Positions 23,723-54,833 of a stretch of DNA of 64,000 nt are shown one piece after another. The position numbers and the translations under genes were made by a program. The notes under the pieces were generated by a model. It was given only the letters and a program-made list of their open reading frames with translations. It ran no database searches and was not told where the DNA came from. The stretch's first letter is position 1, and every line of letters starts with the position of its first letter. The DNA is taken from positions 124,001-188,000 of IMG/VR virus record IMGVR_UViG_3300042350_002797, one strand, 5' to 3'.

Positions 23723-23733
23723 TGGATTTTGGA

Positions 23734-27334: not shown

Positions 27335-27780
27335 GAAACTTCTGAACGACCTTTCTCGATAGGAATGACATTAATGTAACCGGCACCGCGGGTAATATCT
27401 TGCCCTTCCTCTGCCAAAATATTACGTGCTAAGTCGCGAAACCAACGATCAACAATTTCTTCTTCTGGATCTCCATCGAATCCATATCCAGCTTGCTTCA
27501 ATTGTACAATAAAATGCTCATTCCAGTCAAGTTCAAAAAAGCCATTTCTAATATTATCTGGATTTACTTTAGTATCTAAAACTGCTACCCAAGGTTCGTT
27601 ATTAGCAGTAGCTCTTTCTTTCGGAGTCATTTTAGCTAATTCTTCTTGCCGCCGAGCTTCCTCTTCTTTGGCTAAAGCTTCGGCTGCACGAACTAGTGCT
27701 TCAGAAGTTTCTTTTTTTGCTCGTTCTCGTTCTTCCTCGAGTTTTTTAATACCTGTTATTTTTTTAATAAAATCTTTCAT
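27331..27780 (-). CDS. Hypothetical protein
   Basis: Likely start ATG 27780 (TAATG coupling to queE); EPWV.V...GFFELDWN..F motif. Confidence 0.65.
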   Translation of the reverse strand: MKDFIKKITGIKKLEEERERAKKETSEALVRAAEALAKEEEARRQEELAKMTPKERATANNEPWVAVLDTKVNPDNIRNGFFELDWNEHFIVQLKQAGYGFDGDPEEEIVDRWFRDLARNILAEEGQDITRGAGYINVIPIEKGRSEVS

Positions 27781-28628
27781 TAGGTTCCCCATGCATTTTT
27801 GAATAATGGAACTTGTAGTCTGTCACTGTATCTTAGTCCGTGTTTCATTGCTAATTCTGCAACACGGCGATTATTAAGAGCGTATACATTTTCGATACCC
27901 CCAACAGGCATTAAATAAATGTGCCCGCCAAAATCTTCCTGTTTATAAATTTCGATAACTTCTAATGCTTCGTTGACATCGTCTTCGCTAGCAACTACAA
28001 ATTTTAGATATGTATGTCCTAGCTCTTCATAACTTTTTACAATATCTGGTCGTATAGCATCTTCTCTTCTCTCTCCACTAACACTTAACTTTGGGCTCAC
28101 ACTAAATGTAAGATTATGATAGCCGTGTTTATGTGTCCATTTTTCTAGATATTTTCTAAAATCTTTTGATATTTCTTGAGTACCATTAGTTTCAAATGTG
28201 ATATCTTTCAATTTTTTTAATTTATCGTTATCTAATAAATCAGGATAGCTACGTTGCCACCCTAACAAAGGTTCTCCACCTGTTATAACTAAATGTATTC
28301 CTCTCCATTTATTATCAGGTAATAGATCTATCATTCTATTTGCTATGGCATCCACAGTGAGAACAGGACTTAGATCTTTAAATCTTGGATCCCAACTTGC
28401 ATAACTGTCGCATCCAGTTTCTACAATAGGAAGTTCCTCATATTTGTTGTACAAATGTACTACTTCTGCAATATCATCGTTGGCAGTGCTACGTTCTCCA
28501 GGAGGCATGCCGAACCCAGCACAGGTAAAGTTGCAACCAAATGTGCGTAAGAAAATAGAAGGAACACCCATGAAGCGTCCTTCTCCTTGTATACTATAAA
28601 ATAGTTCTGCTATTTTAATTTTACTCAT
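27780..28628 (-). CDS. queE: 7-carboxy-7-deazaguanine synthase (radical SAM)
   Basis: ELFYSIQGEG, FLRTFGCNFTC...CDS (third Cys after an insertion), ITGGEP, ETNGT, SVSPKL, LKFVV, YLMP, RLQ. Confidence 0.92.
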   Translation of the reverse strand: MSKIKIAELFYSIQGEGRFMGVPSIFLRTFGCNFTCAGFGMPPGERSTANDDIAEVVHLYNKYEELPIVETGCDSYASWDPRFKDLSPVLTVDAIANRMIDLLPDNKWRGIHLVITGGEPLLGWQRSYPDLLDNDKLKKLKDITFETNGTQEISKDFRKYLEKWTHKHGYHNLTFSVSPKLSVSGERREDAIRPDIVKSYEELGHTYLKFVVASEDDVNEALEVIEIYKQEDFGGHIYLMPVGGIENVYALNNRRVAELAMKHGLRYSDRLQVPLFKNAWGT

Positions 28629-28912
28629 TGTTTTAGTACCTCCAATGTAGCTATTTTGGCAATTCGCTCTCCAAAGTCATCATCTTTACCAATGATGTAC
28701 ATTTGTGTGTGAGTACGATCTTTCAGTCTATCATGATATCTAAATTCTACAATTTTGCCACCAATAGCATTGTAAATTGTAAAATTAAGAACGGGCTCAC
28801 TACGCATTGAATTACTTTCAACAACAATATCTTGTCCTACAATTTCTCTTCCACTTTCCCATGCTTCTTTAGACCATTCTTTGAATTTTTTCTTAAACCA
28901 TTTTTTAATCAT
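28625..28912 (-). CDS. Hypothetical protein
   Basis: 95 aa, coupled ORF. Confidence 0.6.
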   Translation of the reverse strand: MIKKWFKKKFKEWSKEAWESGREIVGQDIVVESNSMRSEPVLNFTIYNAIGGKIVEFRYHDRLKDRTHTQMYIIGKDDDFGERIAKIATLEVLKQ

Positions 28913-29126
28913 CTTTCATTCCTTCTAGAAATTCGTCAACTCGACGTTCCGCTTCAACTCTGTCCACAGCCATTAATGTTACAGTTAACATATTATCTTT
29001 GTCAAGTTTAATATCGTAAGGCATTTTTCCATTGAGAACAAACTCGTCAGCCAGAGGCCGAACTACTTTATATTCTTTGAGATTCTTCATTCTGAAAATT
29101 ACATCGTCGACATTATGCTTATTCAT
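28905..29126 (-). CDS. Hypothetical protein
   Basis: 73 aa, coupled ORF. Confidence 0.55.
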   Translation of the reverse strand: MNKHNVDDVIFRMKNLKEYKVVRPLADEFVLNGKMPYDIKLDKDNMLTVTLMAVDRVEAERRVDEFLEGMKDD

Positions 29127-29317
29127 TAACTATCTCTTTCCATGGAAGTAATTTCTGTTACTAGAGCAATAACTTGCTCTAAGTTTTGGCAGAGAATTCT
29201 AGCACTTTTATATTCGCCATCTGGATCTCGTCCACTTACGTCTACCATAAATCCGTTATCGTACATGTTAACAGTAAAACTATCCGAAACTTTTTCTAAT
29301 TTATCACTTACATTCAT
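29126..29317 (-). CDS. Hypothetical protein
   Basis: 63 aa, coupled ORF. Confidence 0.55.
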   Translation of the reverse strand: MNVSDKLEKVSDSFTVNMYDNGFMVDVSGRDPDGEYKSARILCQNLEQVIALVTEITSMERDS

Positions 29318-29318
29318 T

Positions 29319-29816
29319 TTAATTTTCCTCTTTAAAATCTATTACATCACCATTCTCGTCAGCACAAATAATTTTAACTTTGTTACCGTTTTCATCCTCG
29401 ATAAGAATTGGTCCCCAAATCCACGCCTCACATTCGTTTTGGCTCCATCCTTCTTCGTCTTCCAGTACTTCATATACACTGGATTCTTCAAAACGTTCTT
29501 TTAGTGCTTCTTGTAGTTCCTCGTCCATATCTTCTGGAAACTCTATATCTTCCCAACAGCCGTCCCACATAGTATCAAGTTCGACATTTTCGATATTATT
29601 ATAACAGCAATCGTACATATTGATGCTGTCTTTATTCTTGTCGCCTCCTGGAACATATGTGAATTCGAATTCAGGAGGATTATCATTATTTGTTTCTACA
29701 AAAAAACTACAACCACGGAATCCTGTTTTACGAATAATTGTTTTTCCATCTTTAACATAATGCTCGTGTTCTTCGCATGATTTTTTGTAGTAAGTCGATA
29801 CTTTCCAATTAGCCAT
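29319..29816 (-). CDS. Acidic hypothetical protein
   Basis: 165 aa, E/D-rich, AGGA SD. Confidence 0.65.
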   Translation of the reverse strand: MANWKVSTYYKKSCEEHEHYVKDGKTIIRKTGFRGCSFFVETNNDNPPEFEFTYVPGGDKNKDSINMYDCCYNNIENVELDTMWDGCWEDIEFPEDMDEELQEALKERFEESSVYEVLEDEEGWSQNECEAWIWGPILIEDENGNKVKIICADENGDVIDFKEEN

Positions 29817-29824
29817 GATTTTCC

Positions 29825-30601
29825 TTATCTAGGAGCAAAGTCCTGTTGTAGTTTAATGTTGTCAAAGAATTCTTTTTTAGTTCCTTGATCATCTTTAAAA
29901 GCACCTTTTAATACTGTAGTCTGTGTAAGACTGCTATGTGCCATAATTCCGCGATTTTCACAGCAGCCATGTGTGGCTTGTATGTAAACACCTACATCTT
30001 TGGCATCGGTCGCCTTCATAATCTCTCTAGCAATGTCATTAGCTAATTCTTCTTGTAAAGTGCCACGGCGAGCACACCACTGAGCAATACGAGTATACTT
30101 ACTGAGACCGATAAGTTTATTAGCGGCGATAATACCGATATAAGCAACACCAGATACAGGTTGGTGATGGTGACTACACATACTACGAAGTTCACTGCGA
30201 ACAACAAGCATGCCTTCGTACCGATCTGTGCTGTCATTAGGAAATGCTGTGCAATCTGGTGCCAGTTCGTATCTACCCGCCATAATTTCATTGTAATACA
30301 TCTTAGCTAGTCGTCTTGCTGTTCCTTGACTGTTAGGATCGGTTTCTCGATCAATTAATAGTGCATCCAATACATGTTCGAATGCCACAGTAGCTTCGTC
30401 AATTAACTGTTGTCGAGTTGAGTCTGCGTAGATGTATTCACTAATATTGTCGCCTGCCCAGAATCTTTTACCATCTCGCTTCATTTTAAAACGAAGTTGA
30501 TCGCTTACTTTGCCTTCTGAGTAGCCACCATTTCCAGCCATTGCGTCTACTCCTGATTCGTGAATATCATCGTTACTTACATACATTTTGTTATAAACCA
30601 T
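29825..30601 (-). CDS. folE: GTP cyclohydrolase I
   Basis: T..R.AKMY, SMCSHH, IGLSKY.R, QE.L, HGCCENRG. Confidence 0.95.
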   Translation of the reverse strand: MVYNKMYVSNDDIHESGVDAMAGNGGYSEGKVSDQLRFKMKRDGKRFWAGDNISEYIYADSTRQQLIDEATVAFEHVLDALLIDRETDPNSQGTARRLAKMYYNEIMAGRYELAPDCTAFPNDSTDRYEGMLVVRSELRSMCSHHHQPVSGVAYIGIIAANKLIGLSKYTRIAQWCARRGTLQEELANDIAREIMKATDAKDVGVYIQATHGCCENRGIMAHSSLTQTTVLKGAFKDDQGTKKEFFDNIKLQQDFAPR

Positions 30602-30619
30602 AAGTTGTCCTTTCTTGCT

Positions 30620-30648
30620 ATTTTATTATATTATTTAGGTTTTGTCAA
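30620..30648 (-). promoter_or_regulatory. sigma70 promoter for folE, with an embedded TAAATA
   Basis: TTGACA-17 nt-TAAAAT; CCTAAATAA inside the spacer. Confidence 0.7.
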
Positions 30649-31428
30649 TCGCAAAAGAGTATTTTTCTTTACTGCGGCACCTAATGTATTTAGGTTTATG
30701 CCACGGTCTTCAGAATATTTTAGTAGTGCTTCTGTATCTTTAGGAAAACAGGCACCGCCAAAACCATAGTATCCATCTGGACCAGGCACTTGAGTATGAC
30801 TATCGCCTATACGTCGATCCATTCTTATTAGGTAGGCAAGGTGTTTCCAATCATAATTATGAGTGTTTGCTAGTTGATTTAATTCATTCATAAAAACAAC
30901 TTTAGTTGCTAGGAATGTATTAATAGAATATTTTACAAATGCCGCTTCGCCTATACCACAATATTCTACGTGTTTAATACCTGGTTGTATTTCTTTTAAA
31001 ATACGTGCTGTGTCACGTTGATAGGCTACCACAGAACCACCTATAATAACCCATTCTGTATTACCAAAATCTGTAACACTAGATTCTGCCCGTAAGAATT
31101 CAGGAACATATACTAAATTAGGTAATTTTTTATTCCATAATTCGTAAAAATCCGGAGGAGCAGTGACTTTGCTAATAATAGTGCCGTTATATCCTTCTAG
31201 ATTTTTTAAAACTTCTTCTACTATACTGGTATCGCAATATCCATTGGTGCCTTGCGGACTAGGAACACAAACAAATACACTAGAACATTCTTTTTTAATT
31301 TGATTGTAAGTAGCTGTATAACCTTTAGCAGGATCTAAAATTATAGGTTCGAAAGATGTTATCAAGTTTTGAGTTATAGCTTCGCCTACGTACCCGTGCC
31401 CAATAATGCCAATTTTTTCATAAATCAT
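30631..31428 (-). CDS. UDP-glucose/GDP-mannose dehydrogenase-family protein (short form lacking the C-terminal domain)
   Basis: GIIGHGYVG, FVCVPSP, PEFLR, KY..N.FLA.KV.F.NE, GFGGACFPKD (catalytic Cys). Confidence 0.9.
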   Translation of the reverse strand: MIYEKIGIIGHGYVGEAITQNLITSFEPIILDPAKGYTATYNQIKKECSSVFVCVPSPQGTNGYCDTSIVEEVLKNLEGYNGTIISKVTAPPDFYELWNKKLPNLVYVPEFLRAESSVTDFGNTEWVIIGGSVVAYQRDTARILKEIQPGIKHVEYCGIGEAAFVKYSINTFLATKVVFMNELNQLANTHNYDWKHLAYLIRMDRRIGDSHTQVPGPDGYYGFGGACFPKDTEALLKYSEDRGINLNTLGAAVKKNTLLRLTKPK

Positions 31429-31640
31429 AAGTATTCACTTAATAATATTGTACATAAGCGATAATCGTTTTCTGTTTTAAATCTAAAAATTAAATGCATG
31501 GTAGACGACGCAGTAATGTAACGGTGTCCTGGCAATCCAAACACTTCCAACACCTTAACACAGATCTCATTCCACGGCATATCATCTTTTTTCCAATCGA
31601 TCCAAATATTGAACGAAGTATCTGACATGTCTTTAGACAT
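31425..31640 (-). CDS. Small hypothetical protein
   Basis: Start ATG 31640 coupled (TAATG) to an upstream 57-aa ORF; WNEIC..V.EVFGLPG.RY. Confidence 0.6.
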   Translation of the reverse strand: MSKDMSDTSFNIWIDWKKDDMPWNEICVKVLEVFGLPGHRYITASSTMHLIFRFKTENDYRLCTILLSEYL

Positions 31641-31813
31641 TATTCGACAAGTTCCATTTCCTCTATCATAGGATAATAGATCCAATTCATTTTTTCTTTT
31701 AATTCTTCGCACATAGCCTGAGCAGCTTCTTCTGCACGTTCTTTAGTATAATAGAGTCTTTCCATAGCTCTGTCGCCCTCAGTATTTGTAGCCGATGCAA
31801 GGTAAACTATCAT
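31640..31813 (-). CDS. Small hypothetical protein (57 aa, not in ORF track)
   Basis: MIVYLASATNTEGDRAMERLYYTKERAEEAAQAMCEELKEKMNWIYYPMIEEMELVE*; ATGA overlap with the HIT stop and TAATG overlap with the next gene. Confidence 0.65.
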   Translation of the reverse strand: MIVYLASATNTEGDRAMERLYYTKERAEEAAQAMCEELKEKMNWIYYPMIEEMELVE

Positions 31814-32181
31814 TTTCTATAATTCCCTTTATCCGGAATGACATGTCTAACTCCTCCTCTTGGATCTTCCATATCGCCTTTGCGTCGAGGTATCATATGC
31901 ACATGCGGATACATTACTGTTTGGCCAGCTGCTTCTCCAACATTTTGGCCGATGTTAAAAGCATCCCACCTTTCAGCTTCAACACCTTCGTGTCCGAACT
32001 TGTAGGCTGCTTTGTAGCATTCCCAGAGATTGTTCCAGTTTTCTTCGGTAGGCACAAATAACAAATGCCCTGGGGTAACTGCGTAAGCGTCTCTAAAGAC
32101 CCAGAAGTCTTTAGTTCTGTATTCAATTTCTGTCCACGGTGCTCTTTTTTCATTTAAGGCCTTTTCAATATCTGTCAGCAT
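31810..32181 (-). CDS. HIT-family nucleotide hydrolase
   Basis: D.Y.VTPGHLLFVP, N.G..AGQTV..PHVHMIPR. Confidence 0.92.
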   Translation of the reverse strand: MLTDIEKALNEKRAPWTEIEYRTKDFWVFRDAYAVTPGHLLFVPTEENWNNLWECYKAAYKFGHEGVEAERWDAFNIGQNVGEAAGQTVMYPHVHMIPRRKGDMEDPRGGVRHVIPDKGNYRK

Positions 32182-32545
32182 ACTCGTTCCAAACCATATT
32201 CATTAATGTAGAATAATTATCCCAGGCCTTTTTAACAGCAGGATTATTATTTCTTGCTTTAATCTCAATCATTTCTTTACGCTTCATATGATTGATGTAA
32301 TCTTGATCTCCACGAGATTTAACAATTACGTCATTCATTCTTTGATCAATTTCGGCTAAGGCATGAAAGTTATCTTTAGGTATTAGAATATCATAACACT
32401 CTAACTCTTCTGTAGCAAAATAAAAATCATGTGCATCCTGATAAGTGCTAACCTGTGGTGGTTTAGCCTTTCTAATAGTGCGTGAACTATGACGTAATTG
32501 AATATCCCAATTACAGCAGAAACGATCTAGTTCTTTATTATCCAC
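32165..32545 (-). CDS. Hypothetical protein
   Basis: Probable GTG start at 32545; C-terminal NPAVKKAWDNY helix. Confidence 0.55.
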   Translation of the reverse strand: MDNKELDRFCCNWDIQLRHSSRTIRKAKPPQVSTYQDAHDFYFATEELECYDILIPKDNFHALAEIDQRMNDVIVKSRGDQDYINHMKRKEMIEIKARNNNPAVKKAWDNYSTLMNMVWNEYADRY

Positions 32546-33113
32546 GCCAAAATTCCTCCCAGGGATAGACAATCCAACAGTCTTCTTCGGCTTTGTTAAT
32601 TTCTATAGTTGAATAATCTACTTCTTCTTTGCTAGCAAGATTATTATGAATCACGGCAAATCTTACGTTGTTATGAAAGATATTTTTCCAAGCATGATTA
32701 TTTGGAAGGCATCCACTGGGCCAGTCTTTTTTAATCCAGGCAATAGTAGCACCGGTATCGTTAATGTCATCTACTATCAAAATCTTTTTACGTAGATCTC
32801 GATTAGTAGGATCGTGACGTACAGGCAATCCAGTAATCTCAAAATGCTCATACCCTCGATCATTCATAGGAACATATCCAAAAGCATCTTCGGCCATGCC
32901 TAAGTCGCTCACACACTCGCCACCGTCACGTAAACTGACCTGTAATGGTCGCATAGGAATATCGAGGTATTGACTAAGCATTACAGCAGGAACAGCACCA
33001 CCGCGTGTGATTCCTACAATGTAATCTGGACGCCAGTTATCTTTTTGTAATTGCCTAGCAATTTCGATAACACTGCCTTGAATATCCGACCAAGTTACAT
33101 GTATTTTTTTCAT
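32538..33113 (-). CDS. Type I phosphoribosyltransferase (Gpt/xanthine-guanine-like)
   Basis: IVGITRGG.VPA, PRPP loop ILIVDDINDTGAT, WIVYPWE; likely start ATG 33113. Confidence 0.9.
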   Translation of the reverse strand: MKKIHVTWSDIQGSVIEIARQLQKDNWRPDYIVGITRGGAVPAVMLSQYLDIPMRPLQVSLRDGGECVSDLGMAEDAFGYVPMNDRGYEHFEITGLPVRHDPTNRDLRKKILIVDDINDTGATIAWIKKDWPSGCLPNNHAWKNIFHNNVRFAVIHNNLASKEEVDYSTIEINKAEEDCWIVYPWEEFWRG

Positions 33114-33322
33114 CTTACACCATTTGCTAAGGTTGTCCAAAGTTTAGAGACTTCTTCTTGATTTAGAAAGAAATCGTATGTACTAGAATTGGTTAATTCG
33201 CCTTTGTCGTTATACTGTTCCCCAGTAAACATAAGATGTTTAAGTCCGTCTGGTTTCATACAGTCATTAACTTTTAAACGAAGCTTCCAAGCCGGTTGAT
33301 CTGTTATTAGTTGTTCAATCAT
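33110..33322 (-). CDS. Small hypothetical protein
   Basis: Likely start ATG 33322 (ATGA overlap). Confidence 0.55.
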   Translation of the reverse strand: MIEQLITDQPAWKLRLKVNDCMKPDGLKHLMFTGEQYNDKGELTNSSTYDFFLNQEEVSKLWTTLANGVR

Positions 33323-33681
33323 TTTGAGTCCTTTAAAGTTTCCCAAGTTTTATATTCTGCTAACGCTTTGTTGTATTCATCATTAATTTTCTTAAGCTTT
33401 GAATACTTCTCCTCCATTATAGCATCTCTTGTAGGAATGTTCAACATAGTTTCTATTCGTTTTAATCTTTCGTGCAGATCGTCACCATTCCATTCTATCT
33501 TGCCGTTAATTTTAATACTGGGATTACTACTATTCGGAATTTCCATAACAGGTTTTCCGTTATTGTTTCCAAATTGAGTAGTTGGATGAATTGTATTGGA
33601 CCATACTGCACTGCCACCAGACCCACTAGGGCTTACATAAATTTGACCAGTAGTTGTAGCAGGTATAGTAAACGTTGTCAT
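33319..33681 (-). CDS. Hypothetical protein
   Basis: Likely start ATG 33681; T/S/G-rich N-terminus, helical C-terminus. Confidence 0.6.
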   Translation of the reverse strand: MTTFTIPATTTGQIYVSPSGSGGSAVWSNTIHPTTQFGNNNGKPVMEIPNSSNPSIKINGKIEWNGDDLHERLKRIETMLNIPTRDAIMEEKYSKLKKINDEYNKALAEYKTWETLKDSK

Positions 33682-33682
33682 A

Positions 33683-34078
33683 CTACTTGTATCCTTTACG
33701 TTCTCTTTCTTTTCCGTCAAAATCTTCTTTAACCATTTTATAAACTTCTTTAAATTTTCTGTATGCGATTTCCAGTCCAGGATATTCTTTACACATTTCT
33801 TGAACACGTTCGTAATCTGGAAATCTACCATCAAACTCGTCTTTATAAAAATTAGTAAAAGTAGTAAAAGAATCGATACCAGTTAAATCTACTGTTTCTA
33901 TATTGCCTATTGTATAAGATCCTGAATTATAAGGTGTACCTGTTAATGTTATAATGTCCGATGTGTTCAAACTTGGGAGGCTATTCACATCCCAAGTTAC
34001 AGTGATATCATCAGATTTTAAAGATTCTGTTTCATCTAAGGTTACTGTATAAATTGGTTCCTGAGAAGAATTGTTCAC
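33683..34078 (-). CDS. Hypothetical protein
   Basis: T/S-rich N-terminus; C-terminal MCKEYPGLEIAYRKFKEVY. Confidence 0.6.
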   Translation of the reverse strand: MNNSSQEPIYTVTLDETESLKSDDITVTWDVNSLPSLNTSDIITLTGTPYNSGSYTIGNIETVDLTGIDSFTTFTNFYKDEFDGRFPDYERVQEMCKEYPGLEIAYRKFKEVYKMVKEDFDGKERERKGYK

Positions 34079-35126
34079 GTAAAGCCTCCGTTTGTTTGTA
34101 CAACATTGGCAATCTTGTTTCGTAAAAATTCATGTGATCTATTATTGTTTTTACTAACATCTGCCTATGATCCATATAATGGTCCCACGTATCCGTCCAG
34201 TTGCTAGGATATTTGAAATTGTTAAAGTACATTTCTGTATATGAAAGTCTGTCTGGCACCATAGGAATAGCATTAAGAACACAACCTTCGTAACAACTAA
34301 TTCCTAGTGTTTCTTGTAGATTAGCACTAAACACAATTTTTGCTTCACCCAATAAGTTATGATATTCATTTTTCGTCAAGTCTTGTTCTTGGCAAATTAT
34401 AAATTCATACTGAGGTAGTAATTCTTTTAAATCTCTAAAAATATTCACCTGCTTTTCTGGAGCAAGTCTGTGTGGGAAAAGAATCAGATCTCTTTTTTTC
34501 ATTCCTTGATATTGTGTAAAAATATCTTGGAAATACTCCATAGGCCAGCCAGAACGAATTATTTTTTGACTGTTTAATAAGTCTTCGAAATCCTCTTGAT
34601 ACCAAGGATTTTCACTCTTTAAACCATTCATTAATAAATTGTCTACAAACATCTTAATATGAAAATCTGTAGCAAAATAATTATGATCGATAGCATCAAA
34701 GAATGACTTTTCAGCATATCGAACCCACGGCTTATTGCCAATAAGTCTGCCTAAAAAGTCTTGGGGATCATAACTACCGGCGTGCCACAGTGCGTGTATT
34801 TTAACAGGTATACTAAGTAAGCTACTCATGTATTTTAAATTAATAATACCTGGATGCCAAGCATCTGTAAATAAAAAATGATCGTGAGCTTTTATTTTGC
34901 CAGTAGTAAATAATCGGCTAATCTCTTCAATTTGACAAGACTTGTAGATATTAGTGCCACCAAAATTAAGGAAGGCGCCAGGAGTAGTGGCACGAGGAAT
35001 ATCCTCAGGGCCAGAGATAACTTCAACATTTTTATGAACCTTTCGTAATGTTCGGGGTAAATGTTCTTTCCATTGAGCAGTATAACGTGTTTCTACTGCT
35101 TCTAAGTCTACAATATAGATAGTCAT
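34032..35126 (-). CDS. GT-B fold glycosyltransferase (GT4-like)
   Basis: WHAGSYD, FPHRLAPEKQ, FSANLQETLGISCYEG (ExxGxxxxE donor-binding motif), P+VP.RLSY.EM. Confidence 0.85.
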   Translation of the reverse strand: MTIYIVDLEAVETRYTAQWKEHLPRTLRKVHKNVEVISGPEDIPRATTPGAFLNFGGTNIYKSCQIEEISRLFTTGKIKAHDHFLFTDAWHPGIINLKYMSSLLSIPVKIHALWHAGSYDPQDFLGRLIGNKPWVRYAEKSFFDAIDHNYFATDFHIKMFVDNLLMNGLKSENPWYQEDFEDLLNSQKIIRSGWPMEYFQDIFTQYQGMKKRDLILFPHRLAPEKQVNIFRDLKELLPQYEFIICQEQDLTKNEYHNLLGEAKIVFSANLQETLGISCYEGCVLNAIPMVPDRLSYTEMYFNNFKYPSNWTDTWDHYMDHRQMLVKTIIDHMNFYETRLPMLYKQTEALREQFFSGTNLYSNLR

Positions 35127-35350
35127 TAGCGATCTTTTTGTTTACGATAGTTATTGTTACGACCTTTGAAATTCCTGTTAGCTTGTAGAAATCTCTTCCA
35201 TACATCGCTTTCTTTATTATAAAGATCTGCCTGATTAAAAGGCAGTAACTCGAAACGACAAAAGTCGAGCAATGCTTCTAAGTCGTCAAAGATTTTAACG
35301 ATGTTAGGATTGTTATCGAAGTATGCATAGCCTTTGTAATTTTTAGCCAT
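35126..35350 (-). CDS. Small hypothetical protein
   Basis: Start ATG 35350 with AAGGA SD; IFDDLE..LDFCR....FN.ADLY. Confidence 0.65.
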   Translation of the reverse strand: MAKNYKGYAYFDNNPNIVKIFDDLEALLDFCRFELLPFNQADLYNKESDVWKRFLQANRNFKGRNNNYRKQKDR

Positions 35351-35372
35351 TTTTGTTTCCTTGTTTATTAAA

Positions 35373-35768
35373 TTAATATTTGATAAAACTACCATTTTCT
35401 CCATCTTCGGAGACCTCGATCCAAACTTCTCTATTTGGATACTTTTTTGAAATCATGTCATACAAATCATCTGACATCATTTCGCAACTTTTATAATCTA
35501 ATTGCAATACAGCTTGGTCGCCATTATACAATTCTTCAAGCCATCTTTTAAACTGGATGAACTCAATGTCTCTGTCATTGTGATTAACGCCAATCCAGAC
35601 ACGAAAATGAAAGATATGGCGATGAGGATGGCCGAGGAACGAAACGTCATATTTGTCTCCTGTTGCTAGGTTAGGATCAGTTAATGCTGCTGGATATTTA
35701 TGAATACCTTCTTTACGAAAGGTAACCCAAATCATTTTATTTGGTCTTATGTCTTGTTTGATTATCAT
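35373..35768 (-). CDS. QueD-like T-fold protein of the DpdL (CDG decarboxylase) type
   Basis: LGHPHRHIF (LxxxHRHxF) instead of the QueD CxxxHGH motif; DRDIEF, SCE, VSEDGENG. Confidence 0.7.
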   Translation of the reverse strand: MIIKQDIRPNKMIWVTFRKEGIHKYPAALTDPNLATGDKYDVSFLGHPHRHIFHFRVWIGVNHNDRDIEFIQFKRWLEELYNGDQAVLQLDYKSCEMMSDDLYDMISKKYPNREVWIEVSEDGENGSFIKY

Positions 35769-36307
35769 TTGTATTCAAAAAAATCGTTAAAGGTTGATTT
35801 ACTCATTGATTCAATTTTCTTCATAGATCCTACAGGTATTCGAAATACATAAGAATTTTCTGTTCTTTGTTCAAAATGACCGTATTCTGATCCTCTTATG
35901 TATGAAGACCTATCTCCATTAATTATTTTCTGTCTTCCAATTTCGTAAGCTTCTTCTATTTTTTCTTGTATGTATGGATCTGTAAAATCGAATAAATCTT
36001 GGTTCGTGACTATTCCATCGGCAGTAGTTATTCTAAATTGCTTTTGTAGTTTTTCAAAAATATGAGTTTGTTTATAAGATAAAGAACAAATATCTTGAAC
36101 AGTTATAGTTCCTACACTATTGGCAGAACCAGAATTTACATCTTTAGTTTTAACTTCTATACCAATCTGTTGTAAATCTGCGCCAGGGCCTTGGTTAATG
36201 TTCCACCCATCTCTAGACATAACTTGTTCAAATTGTTTTCCTCGAATACTATGATCTTTAGATAATACAGTACCAGTATAATCTTTTTTGATTCGTTTAA
36301 TTTTCAT
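35765..36307 (-). CDS. MutH/Sau3AI-like PD-(D/E)xK endonuclease
   Basis: RGKQFE...N.GPGADL..IGIEVKT; downstream EKI..AYE..RQKIING and YVFRI resemble the Sau3AI/MutH layout. Start ATG 36307 (ATGA overlap). Confidence 0.65.
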   Translation of the reverse strand: MKIKRIKKDYTGTVLSKDHSIRGKQFEQVMSRDGWNINQGPGADLQQIGIEVKTKDVNSGSANSVGTITVQDICSLSYKQTHIFEKLQKQFRITTADGIVTNQDLFDFTDPYIQEKIEEAYEIGRQKIINGDRSSYIRGSEYGHFEQRTENSYVFRIPVGSMKKIESMSKSTFNDFFEYK

Positions 36308-36837
36308 ACTGGGCTGTCCTGTGTATATTGATCCCAATGTGTATACTTAGTTTTACGCATTAGATCGTGTAGTTGATGGGTCCATACTCCAGGATTAGTA
36401 GCACCCCAAGTACGGTCGTCAATTTTAAGTGTTGCGTTGTAGTTGTAAAGTTTAATGTAAGGTAATTTTACACTAATCATAGGAATAAATCTATCTTGTT
36501 CGCACCACCCTTCTTCGTGTATTTCTTCAGCATATTTGACATCGAAGTCTAAGCAGACCCAATATCCTGCCTCCAAGCATCCCATAATCCTGTTATCCCA
36601 AATTTTCCAGTTATCATATGTTGCCGGATTAAAACTTTGACTAGTACCAAAGTAAATTTGTTTAATACGTTTATCTTTATCTTCGAAGCTTTGAGAATCT
36701 TCTGCTATTGCAAGAATGTCTTTTAGACTCGGTGTTCCTACAACGAACAATGTGTACATACCGTGAGCTACAGTATGTTCTACTTCATAGCCTGTGAAAT
36801 AAGTTACATCTTGCCTTTGTTCTGTGTTTAATCCCAT
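36304..36837 (-). CDS. Conserved-looking hypothetical protein within the deazaguanine cluster
   Basis: FTGYEVEHT..GM.TLFVVG, IYFG..QSF, LKIDD..W.ATNPGVW. Confidence 0.65.
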   Translation of the reverse strand: MGLNTEQRQDVTYFTGYEVEHTVAHGMYTLFVVGTPSLKDILAIAEDSQSFEDKDKRIKQIYFGTSQSFNPATYDNWKIWDNRIMGCLEAGYWVCLDFDVKYAEEIHEEGWCEQDRFIPMISVKLPYIKLYNYNATLKIDDRTWGATNPGVWTHQLHDLMRKTKYTHWDQYTQDSPV

Positions 36838-37739
36838 TTAATATATCCTCTACTGTAGCCTTGTGGTCTGTTTAATCCATCTTCGAATGCTTGTTGCCAT
36901 TCAGTGTTGCGATTATAGCACTTAGTCCAGAATGTGTCAACTTTTAAATTATTTGTTTTTACCCAAAGCTCTGCTTCGTACATTGCATTATAAAATCCGT
37001 TATGTCTTGGACTAGGCATAGCAATAGTATTGGCATTCCAAAGTAGTTCGCTAAATGTAGTTGTGAATGATTCTTTTTCCGCAGCTATAATCCAAACGCC
37101 TTGCGGAGCCAACAGTTTACGTTTCAGCACTTCTGTGTGTTCTCTAATGTCAATAATCACATCATATTTTTCGTAACTTGGCTCTTGTACTAATACATTC
37201 TCATTTGCCCACAGTTCGTGATTGCTATTCCCCCAAACTTCAATAGTACCAAATTTGTAATAATCTAGTTTTAGTGTGTTGTAAGCAACCCAGGCAAGAA
37301 AGCCACTACCAATTATCAAACATTTAGATAGTTGTAGTATTTTGCTTTGAAGTAATGTGCTGTTTTGTTTGACAATGTTAATACCACAAGCTACTGGTTC
37401 TAAAATATATTTAGGCTCGGCGCTAGGAACTACTATAAATTCTCTAGCTCTAACATTGTAATAGTCGGCATATGCAGGCTCTCCTCGAGTCGCTACATAA
37501 TCGCCTTCTTTAACATTGAGTATTTGTCCACCAACTTTGGTAACAATACCTAATCCTTCGTGACCACTCATATGAGCAGGCAATGTAGGAAATTTGCCTG
37601 TCATCATATCTATATCACTACGGCAAACACCAGTCATAACAGCTTTAACTTCAATTTCAGTATCAGCAGGTTCTGGTTTAGTCCATTCTTCTTCTACAAA
37701 CTTACCATCACTGTATGTTCTAAGTAAACGTACTTTCAA
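36828..37739 (-). CDS. Zn-dependent (MDR) alcohol/sugar dehydrogenase
   Basis: GVCRSD, GHEG.G.V..VG, EPVAC, IIGSGF; likely TTG start at 37739 with GGAGA SD. Confidence 0.88.
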   Translation of the reverse strand: MKVRLLRTYSDGKFVEEEWTKPEPADTEIEVKAVMTGVCRSDIDMMTGKFPTLPAHMSGHEGLGIVTKVGGQILNVKEGDYVATRGEPAYADYYNVRAREFIVVPSAEPKYILEPVACGINIVKQNSTLLQSKILQLSKCLIIGSGFLAWVAYNTLKLDYYKFGTIEVWGNSNHELWANENVLVQEPSYEKYDVIIDIREHTEVLKRKLLAPQGVWIIAAEKESFTTTFSELLWNANTIAMPSPRHNGFYNAMYEAELWVKTNNLKVDTFWTKCYNRNTEWQQAFEDGLNRPQGYSRGYIKWD

Positions 37740-38611
37740 AAGTTCTCCATTCTTTCGTGAATCCAATAATCTATTGTATTTTGTTTACTCCAGAATTTGT
37801 CATTATCGAGATTACGTATTGCATCGTCGATCATACGTTCGTAAGCATCTTCTGGGCATAATCCTAATTCATATGTAAATGTGCTATTGCCGAAATCCAT
37901 TTCAATGTTACGTTTGTCTTTATCTAATGTGCGCCAGTCTGCGGTCAATTTCCATTTGTTACTAAATCGTATTTGAGCAAAGTCGTCTACATCGTATGTA
38001 CCATCTGAATTAACTGTGCCGTATTCTGTGTTTAATAAATCTTTTAAATGGTATCTCATCAAACTAGAACGATTATTCATAGCAGTAGTTAACCAGTCAG
38101 GGTTTAACGCTATATACAAGCTCAGTAAGTGAGGCATTAGATCTCTACTAACTCCACCATAAGCAAGTTTTTTTGTAGTAAACCAGCTTCCAGGACTAGG
38201 CACACGATCTTGATTTAACCAATTAAGTCTGACCCTGTCCGCCGATTGAGCAGATTCTTGTAATTCTTTGATGTTACTACGCCACATATTATTCTTCACC
38301 ATCATAAAACGTGTATCAGGAAAGGAGTGAACAAGAGTCATCCAATTACTAGCCGTGGCCACACCAGGCTTTTCGATAAACACAATTTTACATTCGTGGG
38401 AAATTTTTACAGCTAATTGAAAATGTGTAAAATTTGGTGTACAGATGTGAGCAGTATCAAAAGGGCCTCTAGCTAGTATAGCTGATACAGCATCAGGAAA
38501 GTCTGCTTTTTTACTAATATCAGAATCTACTGTTACAATCTCGGCTCCTAGATTGGTCAGTACATTTTTGTATAATTGACCGATACCCATGCCTATAATA
38601 AGACTTTTCAT
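37736..38611 (-). CDS. Gfo/Idh/MocA-family oxidoreductase
   Basis: IIGMGIG, ICTPNFTH, IEKPG, GG..RDLMPH, DVDD. Confidence 0.88.
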   Translation of the reverse strand: MKSLIIGMGIGQLYKNVLTNLGAEIVTVDSDISKKADFPDAVSAILARGPFDTAHICTPNFTHFQLAVKISHECKIVFIEKPGVATASNWMTLVHSFPDTRFMMVKNNMWRSNIKELQESAQSADRVRLNWLNQDRVPSPGSWFTTKKLAYGGVSRDLMPHLLSLYIALNPDWLTTAMNNRSSLMRYHLKDLLNTEYGTVNSDGTYDVDDFAQIRFSNKWKLTADWRTLDKDKRNIEMDFGNSTFTYELGLCPEDAYERMIDDAIRNLDNDKFWSKQNTIDYWIHERMENF

Positions 38612-39111
38612 TGAATTTTAAGTTCTTCTCTAAGAATGTTTTCTACTAATTCGTTTAGAGTAATATCTTGTTCGTGCGCAATTCTGAAAAGTTTATTTAA
38701 TAAATTGTCTGGAAGGTCTAATGGTACTTGCACACGTTCATCATAATCGATACCCATAACAATATGTGTAGCTTTTTCTATGATGTCATCAGCTAAATCA
38801 ATATCTACAAAGTTAACATGATCATATGCTTCTTTAACATCTACACCTCTGGTTTTAGATTCGTTATTATGTGCTTCTCTAAATTCAGGATGTATCCACC
38901 GATAACTGTTTTCTTTATCATAATCGTGTGCTTCGAATTTATATACAGTAGTAGTTTTAGTATCAAATACAATACCGATACTAAAACCGTCGTGATCTCC
39001 ATTCCAGCAATCTAATGCATGAGCGTTCGGACCAAAACAGTTCCATAGATAGTCGCTTCCTTCAGTGATACGATAATCTACACATTCCATAAAATCTTTA
39101 ATTGTAATCAT
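38608..39111 (-). CDS. Hypothetical protein with C-terminal ribbon-helix-helix-like segment
   Basis: VPLDLPDNLLNKLFRIAHEQDITLNELVENILRE. Confidence 0.6.
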   Translation of the reverse strand: MITIKDFMECVDYRITEGSDYLWNCFGPNAHALDCWNGDHDGFSIGIVFDTKTTTVYKFEAHDYDKENSYRWIHPEFREAHNNESKTRGVDVKEAYDHVNFVDIDLADDIIEKATHIVMGIDYDERVQVPLDLPDNLLNKLFRIAHEQDITLNELVENILREELKIQ

Positions 39112-39353
39112 TTTACATTTTCCTCATACTGTTTAAAAAGTCTAGTTACTGGTTCCATTCTTTCTTGAAAAATATCAGGACTTGTTTGAGATGTTTTATT
39201 CATATCATAATAATCAGGATAGTGTCGTAGACACCATCTTGCTTCATCTCTGATAATTTTAGGAACTCGGGGAGTATGCTGTGGGTTACACAAGTTTACT
39301 AACAGCTCTCTTGTTCTAAGCACAGCTCGAAATCTTTCATCTGGCAAAGTCAT
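39108..39353 (-). CDS. Small conserved phage protein
   Basis: MTLPDER.RAV...TPRVPK.IR..A...LRHYP motif. Confidence 0.65.
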   Translation of the reverse strand: MTLPDERFRAVLRTRELLVNLCNPQHTPRVPKIIRDEARWCLRHYPDYYDMNKTSQTSPDIFQERMEPVTRLFKQYEENVK

Positions 39354-40894
39354 TTTATACTTTCTTCAAGTTCATCAAGTTTATCTTCGGAAAAGTCTTC
39401 AACGACGTCAGATTGTACATTATCATTATCATTATCGTCAAAGAATTTGGCAAAATTGGTATTTGCGTTTATAGTGCGTTTTCCTGTGTAACCTCTAGTG
39501 CCAGGAATTGCCATCCAAAACTTACTAAATTCTTCTACGATTTGATCAGCAACTCCTCTATCACTAGTTGCAAAAATTGCATCTATTACGTCTTTAAAAA
39601 AGATTCTATCAAATTTTTCTTGAACTAGCATACCAGGACATAAACCCGCATCATATTGTCGATTGGCTTCTTGAACAGAACTAAGATGCATCCAAACATT
39701 ATGCCCCATGAGAATAGCATAAGTGAAACTATCCCAACTAGTTTTATTTTCTTTACCCATCCTATTTAGGTTACCAGGAGCGTAAACACAAACTTCGTTA
39801 GTTTTAACACCATCTAATACAGGGCTATTTTCTACATACTTGAATATCCCATCTTGAATTAATGTATCTCTAAATAATCTTGTATCTGTTGCGTATTGTT
39901 TATTATCTAAAGTAGGTAACATTCTATATAACCACTTCTTACGATCTTCAATTTCTGTCTGTATGTACATTTGGCCATTAGCAGTGGCCAAAAATGGACT
40001 TGCACAATCAAAACTAATAGTAAAGTTTTCATTATGATATTTTCTTACAGCACGTTGAATATCGGTAAGTAATAATGCCCATTCCAATTTACTTGTTCCT
40101 AAGAAGTGCATCCAGTCTTGTTTACCTTTTTCTAATAAACCGTCAAATCTTAAAGATACAAGTCTTTTCAAAGTGAGATGCAAATCGCACATATTTTGTC
40201 CACCCATAGCCCAACCGTTAAAATGTGCATCTGGAAATACCTTCGGATCGCAATAGTGTTTCATACGTTGATACCAATCTTCAGCATCTGAATGATTTTC
40301 ACCTTGTAACACGTTTAAAAATTTACAATTACCATTTCGATTTTTAATAAAGTAGTCATTATTTAGATATGTGCCTTGAACTGCTTCCATATAGGAATTA
40401 ATTTTACTAGCAGCAGCGCCTTCAGGACTACGAGCTACCCAAGCAGGAATATCTAAACACATTCCATAATCCATTAGACTGTCCATCCAAGTCAATACTT
40501 GACTACGTTTTTTCTGTGCAGCCGGACAATTAGGATCTTTCCAGTCGGCTTCCCACTTTCCTTTACCTATCTGGAATCCTCCAGAGTCCCCAAGAACCCA
40601 ACTGTCTCCATTTCTTGGACGATTCCTGAACATAGATTCTCTATCATCATTTTTAGCTAAATCTAAATTTGCGTGACCAGCAGAATATAAACACCACTTA
40701 TAATAGAATAATCCTTTTTGAGGATCTAGATAATTAAGTCCTTCGACATCGTTAATAAAGTTTTGTGGTATTCTGCTAGGTTGTACATAAGGATATCTAT
40801 GTCTCTGATATCCAATGAACGATGCATAAAAGCCGCTAGTAGCAGGTAAAAATAATGCATAATCGTTTTGTGTGGCAGTTAAATCTGTATTCAT
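39350..40894 (-). CDS. dpdA: tRNA-guanine transglycosylase-like DNA base-exchange enzyme (DpdA family)
   Basis: GDSGGFQ, LDIP, NVLQG, GWAMGG, HFLG, FDCASP, late HN; context of queE/folE and of clamp/polymerase. Confidence 0.82.
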   Translation of the reverse strand: MNTDLTATQNDYALFLPATSGFYASFIGYQRHRYPYVQPSRIPQNFINDVEGLNYLDPQKGLFYYKWCLYSAGHANLDLAKNDDRESMFRNRPRNGDSWVLGDSGGFQIGKGKWEADWKDPNCPAAQKKRSQVLTWMDSLMDYGMCLDIPAWVARSPEGAAASKINSYMEAVQGTYLNNDYFIKNRNGNCKFLNVLQGENHSDAEDWYQRMKHYCDPKVFPDAHFNGWAMGGQNMCDLHLTLKRLVSLRFDGLLEKGKQDWMHFLGTSKLEWALLLTDIQRAVRKYHNENFTISFDCASPFLATANGQMYIQTEIEDRKKWLYRMLPTLDNKQYATDTRLFRDTLIQDGIFKYVENSPVLDGVKTNEVCVYAPGNLNRMGKENKTSWDSFTYAILMGHNVWMHLSSVQEANRQYDAGLCPGMLVQEKFDRIFFKDVIDAIFATSDRGVADQIVEEFSKFWMAIPGTRGYTGKRTINANTNFAKFFDDNDNDNVQSDVVEDFSEDKLDELEESIK

Positions 40895-41379: not shown

Positions 41380-41582
41380 TATTGCCTTCCCCATTTAATT
41401 TTTAACCATATACGTTCGTGTATGTAATAATCGATACTCAAAAGTATATGCAGTGCTGTAGCAAACCCTGTACTTTTTGCTACATCACCTATAAATAACC
41501 AAGTCCAAAAGATAGTGAATAACCAAGCAGTGATTCTATATGTTATCATTCGCACTATAGTTCGTGTTTTTGTTTCAATCAT
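41379..41582 (-). CDS. Small membrane protein (DUF2061-like)
   Basis: RT+.R..TYR...two hydrophobic segments...YYIHERIW..+.WG. Confidence 0.7.
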   Translation of the reverse strand: MIETKTRTIVRMITYRITAWLFTIFWTWLFIGDVAKSTGFATALHILLSIDYYIHERIWLKIKWGRQ

Positions 41583-42322: not shown

Positions 42323-42336
42323 AAGGTTATTTAGGT

Positions 42337-54832: not shown

Positions 54833-54833
54833 T

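Follow-up and report, generated by a model that had tools for sequence, protein, structure and literature searches.

A predicted 7-deazaguanine DNA modification cluster of an uncultured jumbo phage holds a conserved glycosyltransferase-like gene

Some phages replace guanine in their DNA with 7-deazaguanine derivatives. [quoted passage not shown] 2023, PMC10516641). Its cluster combines FolE, QueE, QueD, a DpdL with LxxxHRH in place of the CxxxHGH of QueD and a divergent TGT-like DpdA of 259 aa, without QueC, and lies next to the polymerase genes. The decarboxylase activity proposed for DpdL has itself never been shown. Acidovorax phage ACP17 carries a tightly packed cluster with the order QueD-FolE-(177-aa protein homologue)-DpdA-glycosyltransferase-DpdL-QueE; DpdL plus DpdA alone gave no dDG in E. 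coli. DNA of the Pseudomonas jumbo phage PA5oct (Wroclawvirus) resists enzymes whose sites contain G, and its authors infer a modified G of unknown identity (PMC12191111). That paper names QueE and a PTPS but no transferase, and the DpdA-like and transferase genes are annotated in the PA5oct record only as hypothetical.

Sugars are added to nucleic acid bases in other systems. In T-even phages and other viruses with 5hmC glycan transferases, a GT-B enzyme encoded beside the base modification genes adds a sugar to the hydroxymethyl group of a pyrimidine as a second protective layer, with mosaic tailoring that varies between relatives. The only known sugar-decorated 7-deazaguanine in a nucleic acid is the mannosyl- or galactosyl-queuosine of eukaryotic tRNA, which is installed after a TGT-type base exchange; the named enzymes are QTMAN/GTDC1, of which GTDC1 is GT4-like, and QTGAL. 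There the sugar goes on the cyclopentenediol of queuosine. In bacterial secondary metabolism, the toyocamycin and tubercidin clusters combine GTP cyclohydrolase I, QueD and QueE with a PRTase that acts on a 7-deazapurine base, without a TGT.

Gene content of the cluster

We examined a window of 64,000 nucleotides (positions 124,001 to 188,000 of IMG/VR record IMGVR_UViG_3300042350_002797) from an uncultured aquatic jumbo phage. The initial annotation described a co-oriented region at 27780-40894 in which a 7-deazaguanine pathway is interleaved with a sugar-tailoring module and a nuclease. This observation was confirmed, with the nuclease as its weak point. The region runs exactly from the stop of queE to the start of the 514-aa gene, all genes lie on the minus strand between RNase H and clamp/PolB, and neighbouring genes mostly overlap or abut (Table 1). 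The absence of queC and queF stated in the initial annotation also held, as Pfam scans of nearly all ORFs of 110 aa or more in the window found neither. Likewise, a motif scan of the window found no CxxxHG[HY] QueD.

Table 1. Features of the cluster and its flanks, with occurrence in 22 full-length related loci.
Positions (strand)	Assignment	Database and motif evidence	Loci
26336-27334 (-)	RNase H / 5'-3' exonuclease, flanking	PF02739 at 2e-20
27780-28628 (-)	QueE, radical-SAM 7-carboxy-7-deazaguanine (CDG) synthase	PHROG 2076 at 6e-55; Cys ligands C32, C36 and C73 invariant, insert between second and third	22 of 22
29825-30601 (-)	FolE, GTP cyclohydrolase I	PF01227 at 2e-39	21 of 22
30631-31428 (-)	Short (265 aa) UDPG/GDP-mannose dehydrogenase family protein (UGDH-like); accessory	PF00984 (central domain) at 3.5e-20; PF03721 (N-terminal domain) at 9e-10; GxGYVG and GGACFPKD motifs	14 of 22
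31810-32181 (-)	HIT-family nucleotide hydrolase or transferase; accessory	PF01230 at 7e-9	14 of 22
32538-33140 (-)	Purine PRTase, Gpt-like; nearly core	PF00156 at 2e-12; closest to xanthine PRTase NF006613 at 2e-14, below its cut-off	19 of 22
34032-35126 (-)	Predicted retaining GT-B (GT4-like) glycosyltransferase, 364 aa; core	E272-x7-E280 (EX7E) invariant
35126-35404 (-)	Conserved 92-aa protein between DpdL and the glycosyltransferase, function unknown	No family hit	18 of 22
35373-35768 (-)	DpdL-type T-fold protein, proposed CDG decarboxylase	LGHPHRH motif	22 of 22
35765-36337 (-)	Sporadic insert, possible PD-(D/E)xK (MutH/Sau3AI-like) endonuclease	D54...(E/D)61-x-K63 conserved in 6 homologues; MutH Pfam hit at E 0.12 (sub-threshold); no PDB hit
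36304-36837 (-)	Conserved 177-aa protein, function unknown	6334 database homologues, none named	21 of 22
36828-37766 (-)	Zn-dependent medium-chain dehydrogenase (Zn-ADH); accessory	ADH_N at 1e-10; GVCRSD and GHEG zinc motifs	12 of 22
37736-38611 (-)	Gfo/Idh/MocA oxidoreductase; accessory	PF01408 at 2e-6	12 of 22
39350-40894 (-)	Divergent DpdA-like guanine transglycosylase, 514 aa (predicted TGT fold)	DSGGFQ motif; no Pfam, PHROG, NCBIfam or PDB sequence hit	22 of 22
41579-42322 (-)	Sliding-clamp homologue, flanking	Annotated in Phosso
42337-45000 (-)	Family-B DNA polymerase (PolB), flanking	PF00136 and PF03104

For the 514-aa protein, which has no Pfam, PHROG, NCBIfam or PDB sequence hit, we examined the predicted structure. 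Its AlphaFold model has pLDDT 89.7, and the top 49 PDB fold matches are all tRNA-guanine transglycosylases. Residues D103, S104, G106, D148, G227, H263 and D296 are invariant in 50 diverse homologues. Profile alignment (hhalign) to the ACP17 DpdA (424 aa) gives 96% probability at E 3e-9, whereas phiST DpdA3 is only weakly similar (72%). A homologue in Vibrio phage 2.275.O sits beside QueF, QueC and FolE. The T-fold protein is 35-67% identical to the DpdL of phiST, ACP17, PA5oct and Phosso, and alignment separates it from the CxxxHGY QueDs and groups it with phiST DpdL.

The 364-aa protein is predicted to adopt a GT-B fold, although its model is only moderate (pLDDT 74). PDB fold matches are BshA, MshA, glycogen synthase, PglA and SenB at probability 1.0, and the best viral match is the ACP17 'Glycosyl transferase family 1' protein at TM 0.8. 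The homologue in phage X1 hits PF00534 at 8e-12. The T4 DNA glucosyltransferases are not among the top 50 matches.

The UGDH-like protein ends where the UDP-binding domain of real UGDHs begins. TIGR03026 matches profile positions 67-294 of 413, and PDB UGDH alignments end near residue 300 of chains 390-480 residues long, indicating that it is not an ordinary UDP-sugar dehydrogenase.

Conservation of the transferase beside DpdA and DpdL

We examined whether the glycosyltransferase co-occurs with DpdA and DpdL across phage genomes, a test that had been set beforehand. The transferase directly abuts DpdA and/or DpdL, often with overlapping stop and start codons, in PA5oct-like Pseudomonas phages, Acidovorax ACP17, Xanthomonas X1/BUDD, Burkholderia BCSR5, Sinorhizobium Phosso and many aquatic contigs, thus in at least five divergent phage lineages whose other genes differ. 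In a collection of 50,697 phage records, 17 of the 22 records with the transferase also hold DpdL, out of only 28 DpdL-positive records. The remaining five are Xanthomonas/Erwinia phage records with a distant transferase homologue (about 24% identity) and no DpdL hit. In the 22 full-length related loci, DpdA, DpdL and QueE are always present with the transferase. Conversely, DpdL systems occur without this transferase in phiST, in RHph_I1_18 and in one of the contigs compared, L092.

The order PolB-clamp-cluster-RNase H is shared with PA5oct and Phosso. PA5oct carries PolB-clamp-DpdA-like-glycosyltransferase-DpdL...QueE...RNase H, with identities of 34% (DpdA), 41% (transferase) and 55% (DpdL) and a distant homologue of the PRTase, but lacks the Gfo, Zn-ADH, UGDH-like, HIT and 177-aa genes. 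ACP17 has no oxidoreductases. phiST has no homologue of the glycosyltransferase, of the 177-aa protein or of the oxidoreductases. The 177-aa protein travels with DpdA and DpdL, as its homologues occur next to DpdA in ACP17 and in the transferase-less contig L092.

In contrast, the proposed sugar-tailoring module is accessory. The Gfo and Zn-ADH genes always occur together, but they, the UGDH-like gene and HIT are each present in only about half of close relatives and are absent from the cultured phages. The UGDH-like gene is sometimes relocated between PolB and the clamp. The nuclease-like ORF is a sporadic insert and not part of the system: it was found in 7 of about 70 loci, always in the same slot, is absent from loci L004-L006, and its assignment rests on the motif alone. 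The PRTase resembles a guanine/xanthine salvage enzyme rather than a sugar enzyme.

A possible glycosylated 7-deazaguanine

The initial annotation proposed that the phage installs 7-deazaguanine in its DNA and decorates it with an oxidised or epimerised sugar. Our data support this interpretation only in part: the DpdL-type 7-deazaguanine pathway with a DpdA-like transglycosylase, and the tie of the transferase to it, are supported, whereas a fixed tailoring module with a nuclease is not. We suggest that this is a cluster of the dDG type extended by a glycosylation step. In this view, FolE and QueE, with a QueD supplied from elsewhere in the genome or by the host, would make CDG, which the DpdL-type protein would convert, probably by decarboxylation, to 7-deazaguanine. 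The DpdA-like enzyme would swap that base for guanine in phage DNA, and the GT4-like transferase would add a sugar to it, most likely after it is in DNA. In this phage the UGDH-like enzyme, Gfo/Idh/MocA and Zn-ADH would oxidise or epimerise the attached sugar, while the PRTase probably recycles the guanine released by base exchange. Mosaic presence of the oxidoreductases fits variable tailoring, and loss of the UDP-binding domain fits a substrate that is not a UDP-sugar. Gene identities, folds, motifs and the conserved neighbourhood are what the analysis shows, whereas every chemical step, the acceptor atom, the sugar and the order of insertion and glycosylation are inferred, and the placement of the sugar on deazaguanine in DNA rests on gene neighbourhood alone. 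We are confident that 7-deazaguanine enters the DNA, but its glycosylation, and with it the scheme as a whole, remains tentative. 7-Deazaguanine offers no obvious hydroxyl acceptor, and a C-glycoside, an N-glycoside or an ester on the carboxyl of CDG would each be unusual. Queuosine with its cyclopentenediol cannot be made by this pathway, which has no QueC, QueF, QueA or QueG. Moreover, the donor sugar pathway is incomplete, as no nucleotidyltransferase was recognised and the UGDH-like enzyme is truncated.

Other readings appear less likely. The sugar could be added before insertion, with the transferase acting on the free deazapurine base or on a pterin/CPH4-stage intermediate and DpdA inserting an already decorated base, or the PRTase could make a deazaguanine nucleotide that is processed and polymerised; either way the product would still be a decorated deazaguanine in DNA. 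The closest solved relatives of the transferase mostly use small-molecule acceptors (BshA/malate, MshA/inositol phosphate, SenB and, at rank 44, the pterin glucosyltransferase BGluT), the PRTase is nearly core, PRTases act on CDG or preQ0 in tubercidin and toyocamycin biosynthesis, and eukaryotic TGT accepts the bulky base queuine. However, known DNA glycosylations (T4 hmC, 5hmC glycans) and that of queuosine in tRNA occur on the polymer, the PRTase fits recycling of guanine equally well, and no kinase or reductase set for a nucleotide route was recognised in the cluster; we consider this reading unlikely. Equally unlikely is that the DNA carries only plain dDG or dCDG, with the transferase and oxidoreductases acting on another base, a phage or host protein, a cell-envelope glycan or a soluble metabolite and merely sharing an early/middle operon with the replication genes. 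phiST reaches full dDG replacement without this transferase, the accessory genes come and go between close relatives, five records hold distant transferase homologues without DpdL, and phage replication regions often hold unrelated auxiliary genes. Against this stand the direct abutment in divergent lineages and the complete linkage in the 22 loci; furthermore, no hydroxymethylase or other base modification pathway was found in the window, where the thymidylate synthase is an ordinary ThyX.

It is very unlikely that the TGT-like enzyme modifies tRNA instead of phage DNA, or that the cluster makes a soluble deazapurine or pterin glycoside. The fold matches are all tRNA enzymes, and FolE, a T-fold enzyme, reductases and a glycosyltransferase recall pterin-glycoside synthesis, with BGluT among the fold matches. 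Yet QueE commits the pathway to deazapurines, the gene sits between PolB/clamp and RNase H in all relatives, the window has no tRNA genes, and PA5oct, which has the same core, has restriction-resistant DNA with an inferred modified G. Unlike in the toyocamycin and tubercidin clusters, a TGT-fold enzyme and the replication-gene context here point to DNA. In addition, the family is homologous to the ACP17 protein that sits where Cui et al. place dpdA of that phage.

We found no paper describing such a system. Host glycosylases that attack phages with modified guanines (10.1101/2025.10.29.685425) give a selective reason for further decoration. Together, the position of a predicted sugar-adding enzyme inside the same cluster in divergent phages suggests, but does not prove, a sugar-decorated purine not yet described in DNA.

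Gene content of the cluster and predicted identity of its enzymes

The window comes from an uncultured jumbo phage (IMG/VR contig UViG_3300042350_002797, 364,554 bp), whose nearest cultured relatives by PolB are Sinorhizobium phage Phosso (49%), Agrobacterium phage Atu_ph07 and the Rak2/121Q-like and PA5oct-like jumbo phages. All genes from 26336 to 45000 lie on the minus strand, and neighbouring genes mostly overlap or abut. Every gene that the initial annotation listed in this region is present, and its observation holds. A megablast of the region against 50,697 phage records found no match.

Coordinates of the features examined in the window
Position	Strand	Feature	Sequence evidence
27780-28628	-	QueE	PHROG 2076 at 6e-55; three cluster Cys invariant across six phage QueEs
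29825-30601	-	FolE	2e-39
30631-31428	-	Nucleotide-sugar-dehydrogenase family protein (UGDH-like), 265 aa	PF03721 at 9e-10; PF00984 at 3.5e-20
31810-32181	-	HIT	
32538-33140	-	PRTase	best against xanthine PRTase (NF006613) at 2e-14, below that model's cut-off
34032-35126	-	Predicted retaining GT-B glycosyltransferase, 364 aa	
35373-35768	-	DpdL-type protein with an assigned T-fold	LGHPHRH
35765-36337	-	Nuclease-like ORF, 190 aa	MutH Pfam hit at E 0.12
36828-37766	-	Zn-dependent medium-chain dehydrogenase (Zn-ADH)	
36940-36912	-	Perfect sigma-70 consensus	TTGACA, 17-nt spacer, TG, TATAAT
37736-38611	-	Gfo/Idh/MocA oxidoreductase	
38608-39111	-	167-aa protein	C-terminal ribbon-helix-helix (Arc/CopG-like) domain
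39350-40894	-	DpdA-like protein with a predicted TGT fold, 514 aa	DSGGFQ at residues 103-108
6001-8000	+	Low-GC segment (23.7% against about 35% elsewhere)	ORFs at 6258-8435 without a Pfam hit
11701-15557 (+), 19217-20404 (+) and 17126-17929 (-)		Four radical-SAM proteins, with an Asp/Asn beta-hydroxylase-like protein alongside	
20365-21033	-	ThyX, flavin-dependent thymidylate synthase	7e-46
22497-24825	-	MoxR-like AAA ATPase beside a DUF2201 metallopeptidase/VWA protein	ATPase 52% identical to a PA5oct virion-associated ATPase
46259-47098 and 50375-52830	-	Annexin-repeat protein and two proteins with glycoside hydrolase family 19 (lysozyme/chitinase-like) domains	
53678-61141	-	Run of host-like proteostasis genes	
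53678-54118	-	Ferritin-like	
57588-59840	-	ClpB/ClpA-like two-ring AAA+ chaperone	
59803-60336	-	Peptide deformylase	
60311-61141	-	DnaJ	

The 514-aa protein and the glycosyltransferase could not be identified from sequence alone, as Pfam, PHROG, NCBIfam and PDB sequence or profile searches returned nothing for either. For the 514-aa protein there was likewise no Pfam (including PF01702), PHROG or NCBIfam hit for 50 members of its family. Its relationship to guanine transglycosylases is visible only by fold and by profile-profile comparison. With an alignment of 50 diverse homologues (25-89% identity) its AlphaFold model reached pLDDT 89.7, and the top 49 PDB fold matches are all tRNA-guanine transglycosylases, at probability 1.0, E about 3e-7 and target TM about 0.5. 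D103 and S104 of the DSGGFQ motif, together with D148, G227, H263 and D296, are invariant in these homologues; D296 is assigned as the nucleophile by analogy only. Comparison with hhalign gave 96% probability (E 3e-9) to the 424-aa DpdA of Acidovorax phage ACP17, and 72% (E 3.5e-5, over 82 columns) to the DpdA3 of Cellulophaga phage phiST, CGPG_00065. The protein is twice as long as phiST DpdA3, so it may be a separate subfamily.

The 364-aa protein gave a model of only moderate quality (pLDDT 74) with a clear retaining GT-B fold. It has 79 PDB matches with E at or below 0.001, of which the listed top matches are nearly all glycosyltransferases or GT-B fold enzymes with TM 0.5-0.6, including BshA, MshA, glycogen synthase, PglA and SenB. 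In a viral structure library the top match is the ACP17 GT family 1 protein, at TM 0.8. The C-terminal domain carries an EX7E motif, E272-TLGISCY-E280, and both Glu residues are invariant in 24 sequences that include PA5oct, Phosso and ACP17. The window protein has no PF00534 (Glycos_transf_1) hit even at E 10, whereas its homologue in Xanthomonas phage X1 (phmmer 1.9e-28 to the window protein) hits PF00534 at 8e-12, above the cut-off. We considered whether the enzyme could be a T4-like DNA glucosyltransferase or a pterin glucosyltransferase. Neither idea is supported, as the T4 enzymes are absent from the top 50 fold matches and BGluT is only at rank 44.

The T-fold protein groups with the DpdL proteins of phiST, ACP17, PA5oct and Phosso, which are QueD paralogues. 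Homology to phiST DpdL (CGPG_00067) was found by tblastn (1e-9, 37% identity) and by phmmer (1.8e-14). An alignment with 7 DpdL and 2 phage QueD sequences shows FLGxPHRH against the CxxxHGY of the ACP17 and phiST QueDs. DpdA-like, FolE and QueE genes accompany it, and searches of the window found no QueC and no QueF, as the initial annotation had stated. No QueD was found in the 64-kb window either, and it must come from elsewhere; it may lie elsewhere in the roughly 364-kb genome, as in PA5oct.

The nucleotide-sugar-dehydrogenase family protein keeps the NAD motif (GIIGHGYVG) and the catalytic cysteine (GGACFPKD). However, it stops where the UDP-binding domain (PF03720) of true UGDHs begins, matches only profile positions 67-294 of 413 and scores below every equivalog cut-off. 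Relatives keep the same short length (265-267 aa), so it is not a pseudogene, and it is not a normal UDP-glucose dehydrogenase. The weak item is the 190-aa ORF, which the initial annotation called a PD-(D/E)xK nuclease. A D...(E/D)xK motif is conserved in 6 homologues, but apart from the MutH hit at E 0.12 neither the single sequence nor a 6-sequence profile found a PDB hit.

Scans for promoters and terminators were no better than shuffled sequence, although the perfect sigma-70 consensus lies inside the 3' end of the Zn-ADH gene, just upstream of the gene for a conserved 177-aa protein. The 167-aa protein could be a local regulator and is present only in the closest relatives (3 of 22 loci). 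We also looked for a link between the transferase and a hydroxymethyl-pyrimidine pathway. Nothing was found: the window encodes an ordinary ThyX, and no ThyA-like hydroxymethylase was seen, so there is no sign of a hydroxymethyl-pyrimidine modification in the window. Elsewhere in the window, three of the four radical-SAM proteins are consecutive and two of those have SPASM-like iron-sulfur domains. This is an unusual concentration for a phage, reminiscent of peptide (RiPP-like) or cofactor maturation, and is unrelated to QueE. The segment of low GC content falls in the tail-fibre region and may hold recently acquired or fast-evolving host-recognition genes. The annexin-repeat and family 19 genes also occur in the marine relatives.

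Conservation of the glycosyltransferase beside dpdA and dpdL

We next examined how these genes are distributed among phages. The 514-aa protein belongs to a large family with 953 clusters at 50% identity and more than 8000 close homologues, many from marine samples. In cultured phages the family occurs in three places: the PA5oct-like Pseudomonas phages, Phosso, and Vibrio phage 2.275.O. In the latter it sits beside QueF, a YhhQ-like transporter, QueC, an amidotransferase and FolE, a preQ1-type pathway. The homologous ACP17 protein sits where Cui et al. place the ACP17 dpdA (PMC10516641). These contexts identify the family as a predicted DpdA. The 370-aa gene that follows the DpdA of Vibrio phage 2.275.O was examined as a possible distant transferase; it is not one, and has a weak amidoligase hit.

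Gene order around the glycosyltransferase (GT) in cultured phages
Phage	Gene order
PA5oct	DpdA-GT-DpdL ... QueE ... RNase H
ACP17	QueD-FolE-(177-aa homologue)-DpdA-GT-DpdL-QueE, with overlapping stops and starts
Xanthomonas X1	FolE ... GT-TGT-DpdL-QueE
Burkholderia BCSR5	DpdL ... GT-DpdA ... QueE ... FolE
Phosso	clamp-x-DpdL-GT-x-FolE ... QueE

Among 50,697 phage records, 22 hold a homologue of the transferase and 28 hold a DpdL, and 17 hold both. Of 80 IMG/VR loci retrieved with the transferase, we counted gene content in the 22 that have full 10-kb flanks.

Genes found in the 22 transferase loci with full flanks
Gene	Loci (of 22)
DpdA-like	22
DpdL	22
QueE	22
FolE	21
177-aa protein	21
PRTase	19
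HIT	14
UGDH-like	14
Gfo/Idh/MocA	12
Zn-ADH	12
190-aa ORF	2

Gfo and Zn-ADH always occur together, and the closest non-identical relative (locus L012, transferase 84% identical) already lacks both. The UGDH-like gene sometimes sits between PolB and the clamp. More distant homologues of the 190-aa ORF occupy the same slot in five further loci. When present (7 of about 70 loci, 26-37% identity) it always lies between the 177-aa gene and dpdL, a pattern that suggests a homing-type or selfish endonuclease. We tested whether the 177-aa protein has homologues next to the transferase in phiST, X1 and Phosso; hhalign was negative or marginal (E 0.085 for X1), and jackhmmer found it only in ACP17 and in aquatic contigs. 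PolB is intact in the window (887 aa), is called as two genes (531 + 339 aa; 6204-7799 and 7848-8867 in that contig's coordinates) in one marine relative, and is interrupted in PA5oct by a Hef-like homing endonuclease (locus L001, 5605-10831).

The transferase is not obligatory for DpdL systems. DpdL occurs without it in phiST, which has proven dDG at about 302,000 per 10^6 nucleotides, in Rhizobium phage RHph_I1_18, and in L092, a metagenomic contig from a distant relative. L092 has the DpdA-like gene, the 177-aa protein and DpdL, and a methyltransferase-like gene follows dpdA directly (L092 6395-7147), which may be a different decoration of the same base. Together, these comparisons show a stable core (FolE, QueE, DpdL, DpdA), a decoration slot that holds the transferase in many lineages, and a fast-changing set of redox enzymes around it.

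Proposed pathway and alternative explanations

It is established that FolE, QueD and QueE make CDG, that DpdA enzymes exchange guanine in DNA for 7-deazaguanines, and that the DpdL-encoding phage phiST contains dDG, although the decarboxylase activity of DpdL is itself only proposed (PMC10516641). Our analysis demonstrates the gene identities, predicted folds, motifs and linkage, whereas the chemistry, including base exchange in DNA and sugar transfer with its donor and acceptor, is inferred from them. In this view CDG is converted by DpdL, the product is inserted by the DpdA-like enzyme, and the GT4-like enzyme then adds a sugar. The UDP-domain-less dehydrogenase, Gfo/Idh/MocA and Zn-ADH would modify that sugar in this lineage; loss of the UDP-binding domain is what one would expect if the substrate is a sugar already attached to a base or to DNA. 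The Gpt-like PRTase most simply would recycle the guanine released by base exchange into GMP and GTP, which feeds FolE, although action on the deazapurine base, as in tubercidin or toyocamycin biosynthesis, is an alternative.

Three outside observations fit this picture. PA5oct DNA resists several enzymes whose sites contain G, and its authors infer a modified G of unknown structure (PMC12191111). ACP17 DpdL plus DpdA alone gave no dDG in E. coli, and the authors suggested missing enzymes (PMC10516641). Hosts carry glycosylases and END nucleases that target modified guanines, which gives a reason to add a second layer.

We consider it likely that 7-deazaguanine enters the DNA of this phage, whereas the proposal that it carries a sugar is only tentative. 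7-Deazaguanine has no hydroxyl, so the linkage would have to be a C- or N-glycoside, or an ester if CDG is the acceptor. The nearest solved relatives of the transferase, whose model is only moderate, act mostly on small molecules, and no complete NDP-sugar pathway is in the window. Other explanations remain. The sugar could be added before insertion, or the base could enter by a nucleotide route, which we regard as unlikely. It is similarly unlikely that the DNA holds plain dDG while the transferase works elsewhere, and a tRNA or soluble metabolite target is very unlikely.

The interpretation given in the initial annotation, a 7-deazaguanine in DNA decorated with an oxidised or epimerised sugar, is supported only in part. 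The oxidoreductases that it read as a sugar-tailoring module are accessory and mosaic, the UGDH-like enzyme is truncated, the nuclease-like ORF is a sporadic insert and not part of the system, and the PRTase looks like purine salvage.

Implications of a proposed glycosylated 7-deazaguanine

The core is a member of the known DpdL-type 7-deazaguanine systems, with a divergent DpdA branch clearly related to the ACP17 enzyme and only weakly to phiST DpdA3. The conserved glycosyltransferase and the variable redox genes are not described in the papers searched. Literature searches for a glycosylated 7-deazaguanine in DNA found nothing, which does not prove that no report exists, and the word 'glycosyl' does not occur in the main text of Cui et al. 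2023. The proposal can be tested directly in cultured phages.

In its boldest form, which is possible but less likely than not, a large and globally abundant group of aquatic jumbo phages, together with the cultured phages PA5oct, ACP17, X1, BCSR5 and Phosso, would replace guanine in their DNA with a glycosylated 7-deazaguanine. The sugar would be attached by a dedicated GT4-like enzyme, possibly as a C-glycoside on the electron-rich C7, and in some lineages would be further oxidised, to a uronate or keto-sugar, by dehydrogenases that have lost their UDP-binding domain because they work on the DNA-bound sugar. All known glycosylated DNA bases are pyrimidines (glucosyl-hmC, arabinosyl-hmC, base J), and all eight known DNA 7-deazaguanines carry only small groups at position 7. 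A sugar-decorated 7-deazaguanine would add a new class of DNA base, and would be the first sugar-bearing purine analogue found in any DNA.

Such a base could explain the unidentified modified G of the therapeutic-candidate phage PA5oct, and also why DpdL plus DpdA of ACP17 failed to make dDG in E. coli. It would show a second, independent case of the logic seen in T4, in which the base is modified and then covered with sugar, probably in response to host nucleases and glycosylases that recognise modified guanines. The gene families are very abundant, with more than 8000 homologues each of the DpdA-like and transferase proteins found in metagenomes, so the modification would be ecologically common and would also matter for sequencing bias and for restriction-based methods. 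Even if no sugar is found, the work defines a large, previously unannotated putative DpdA subfamily.
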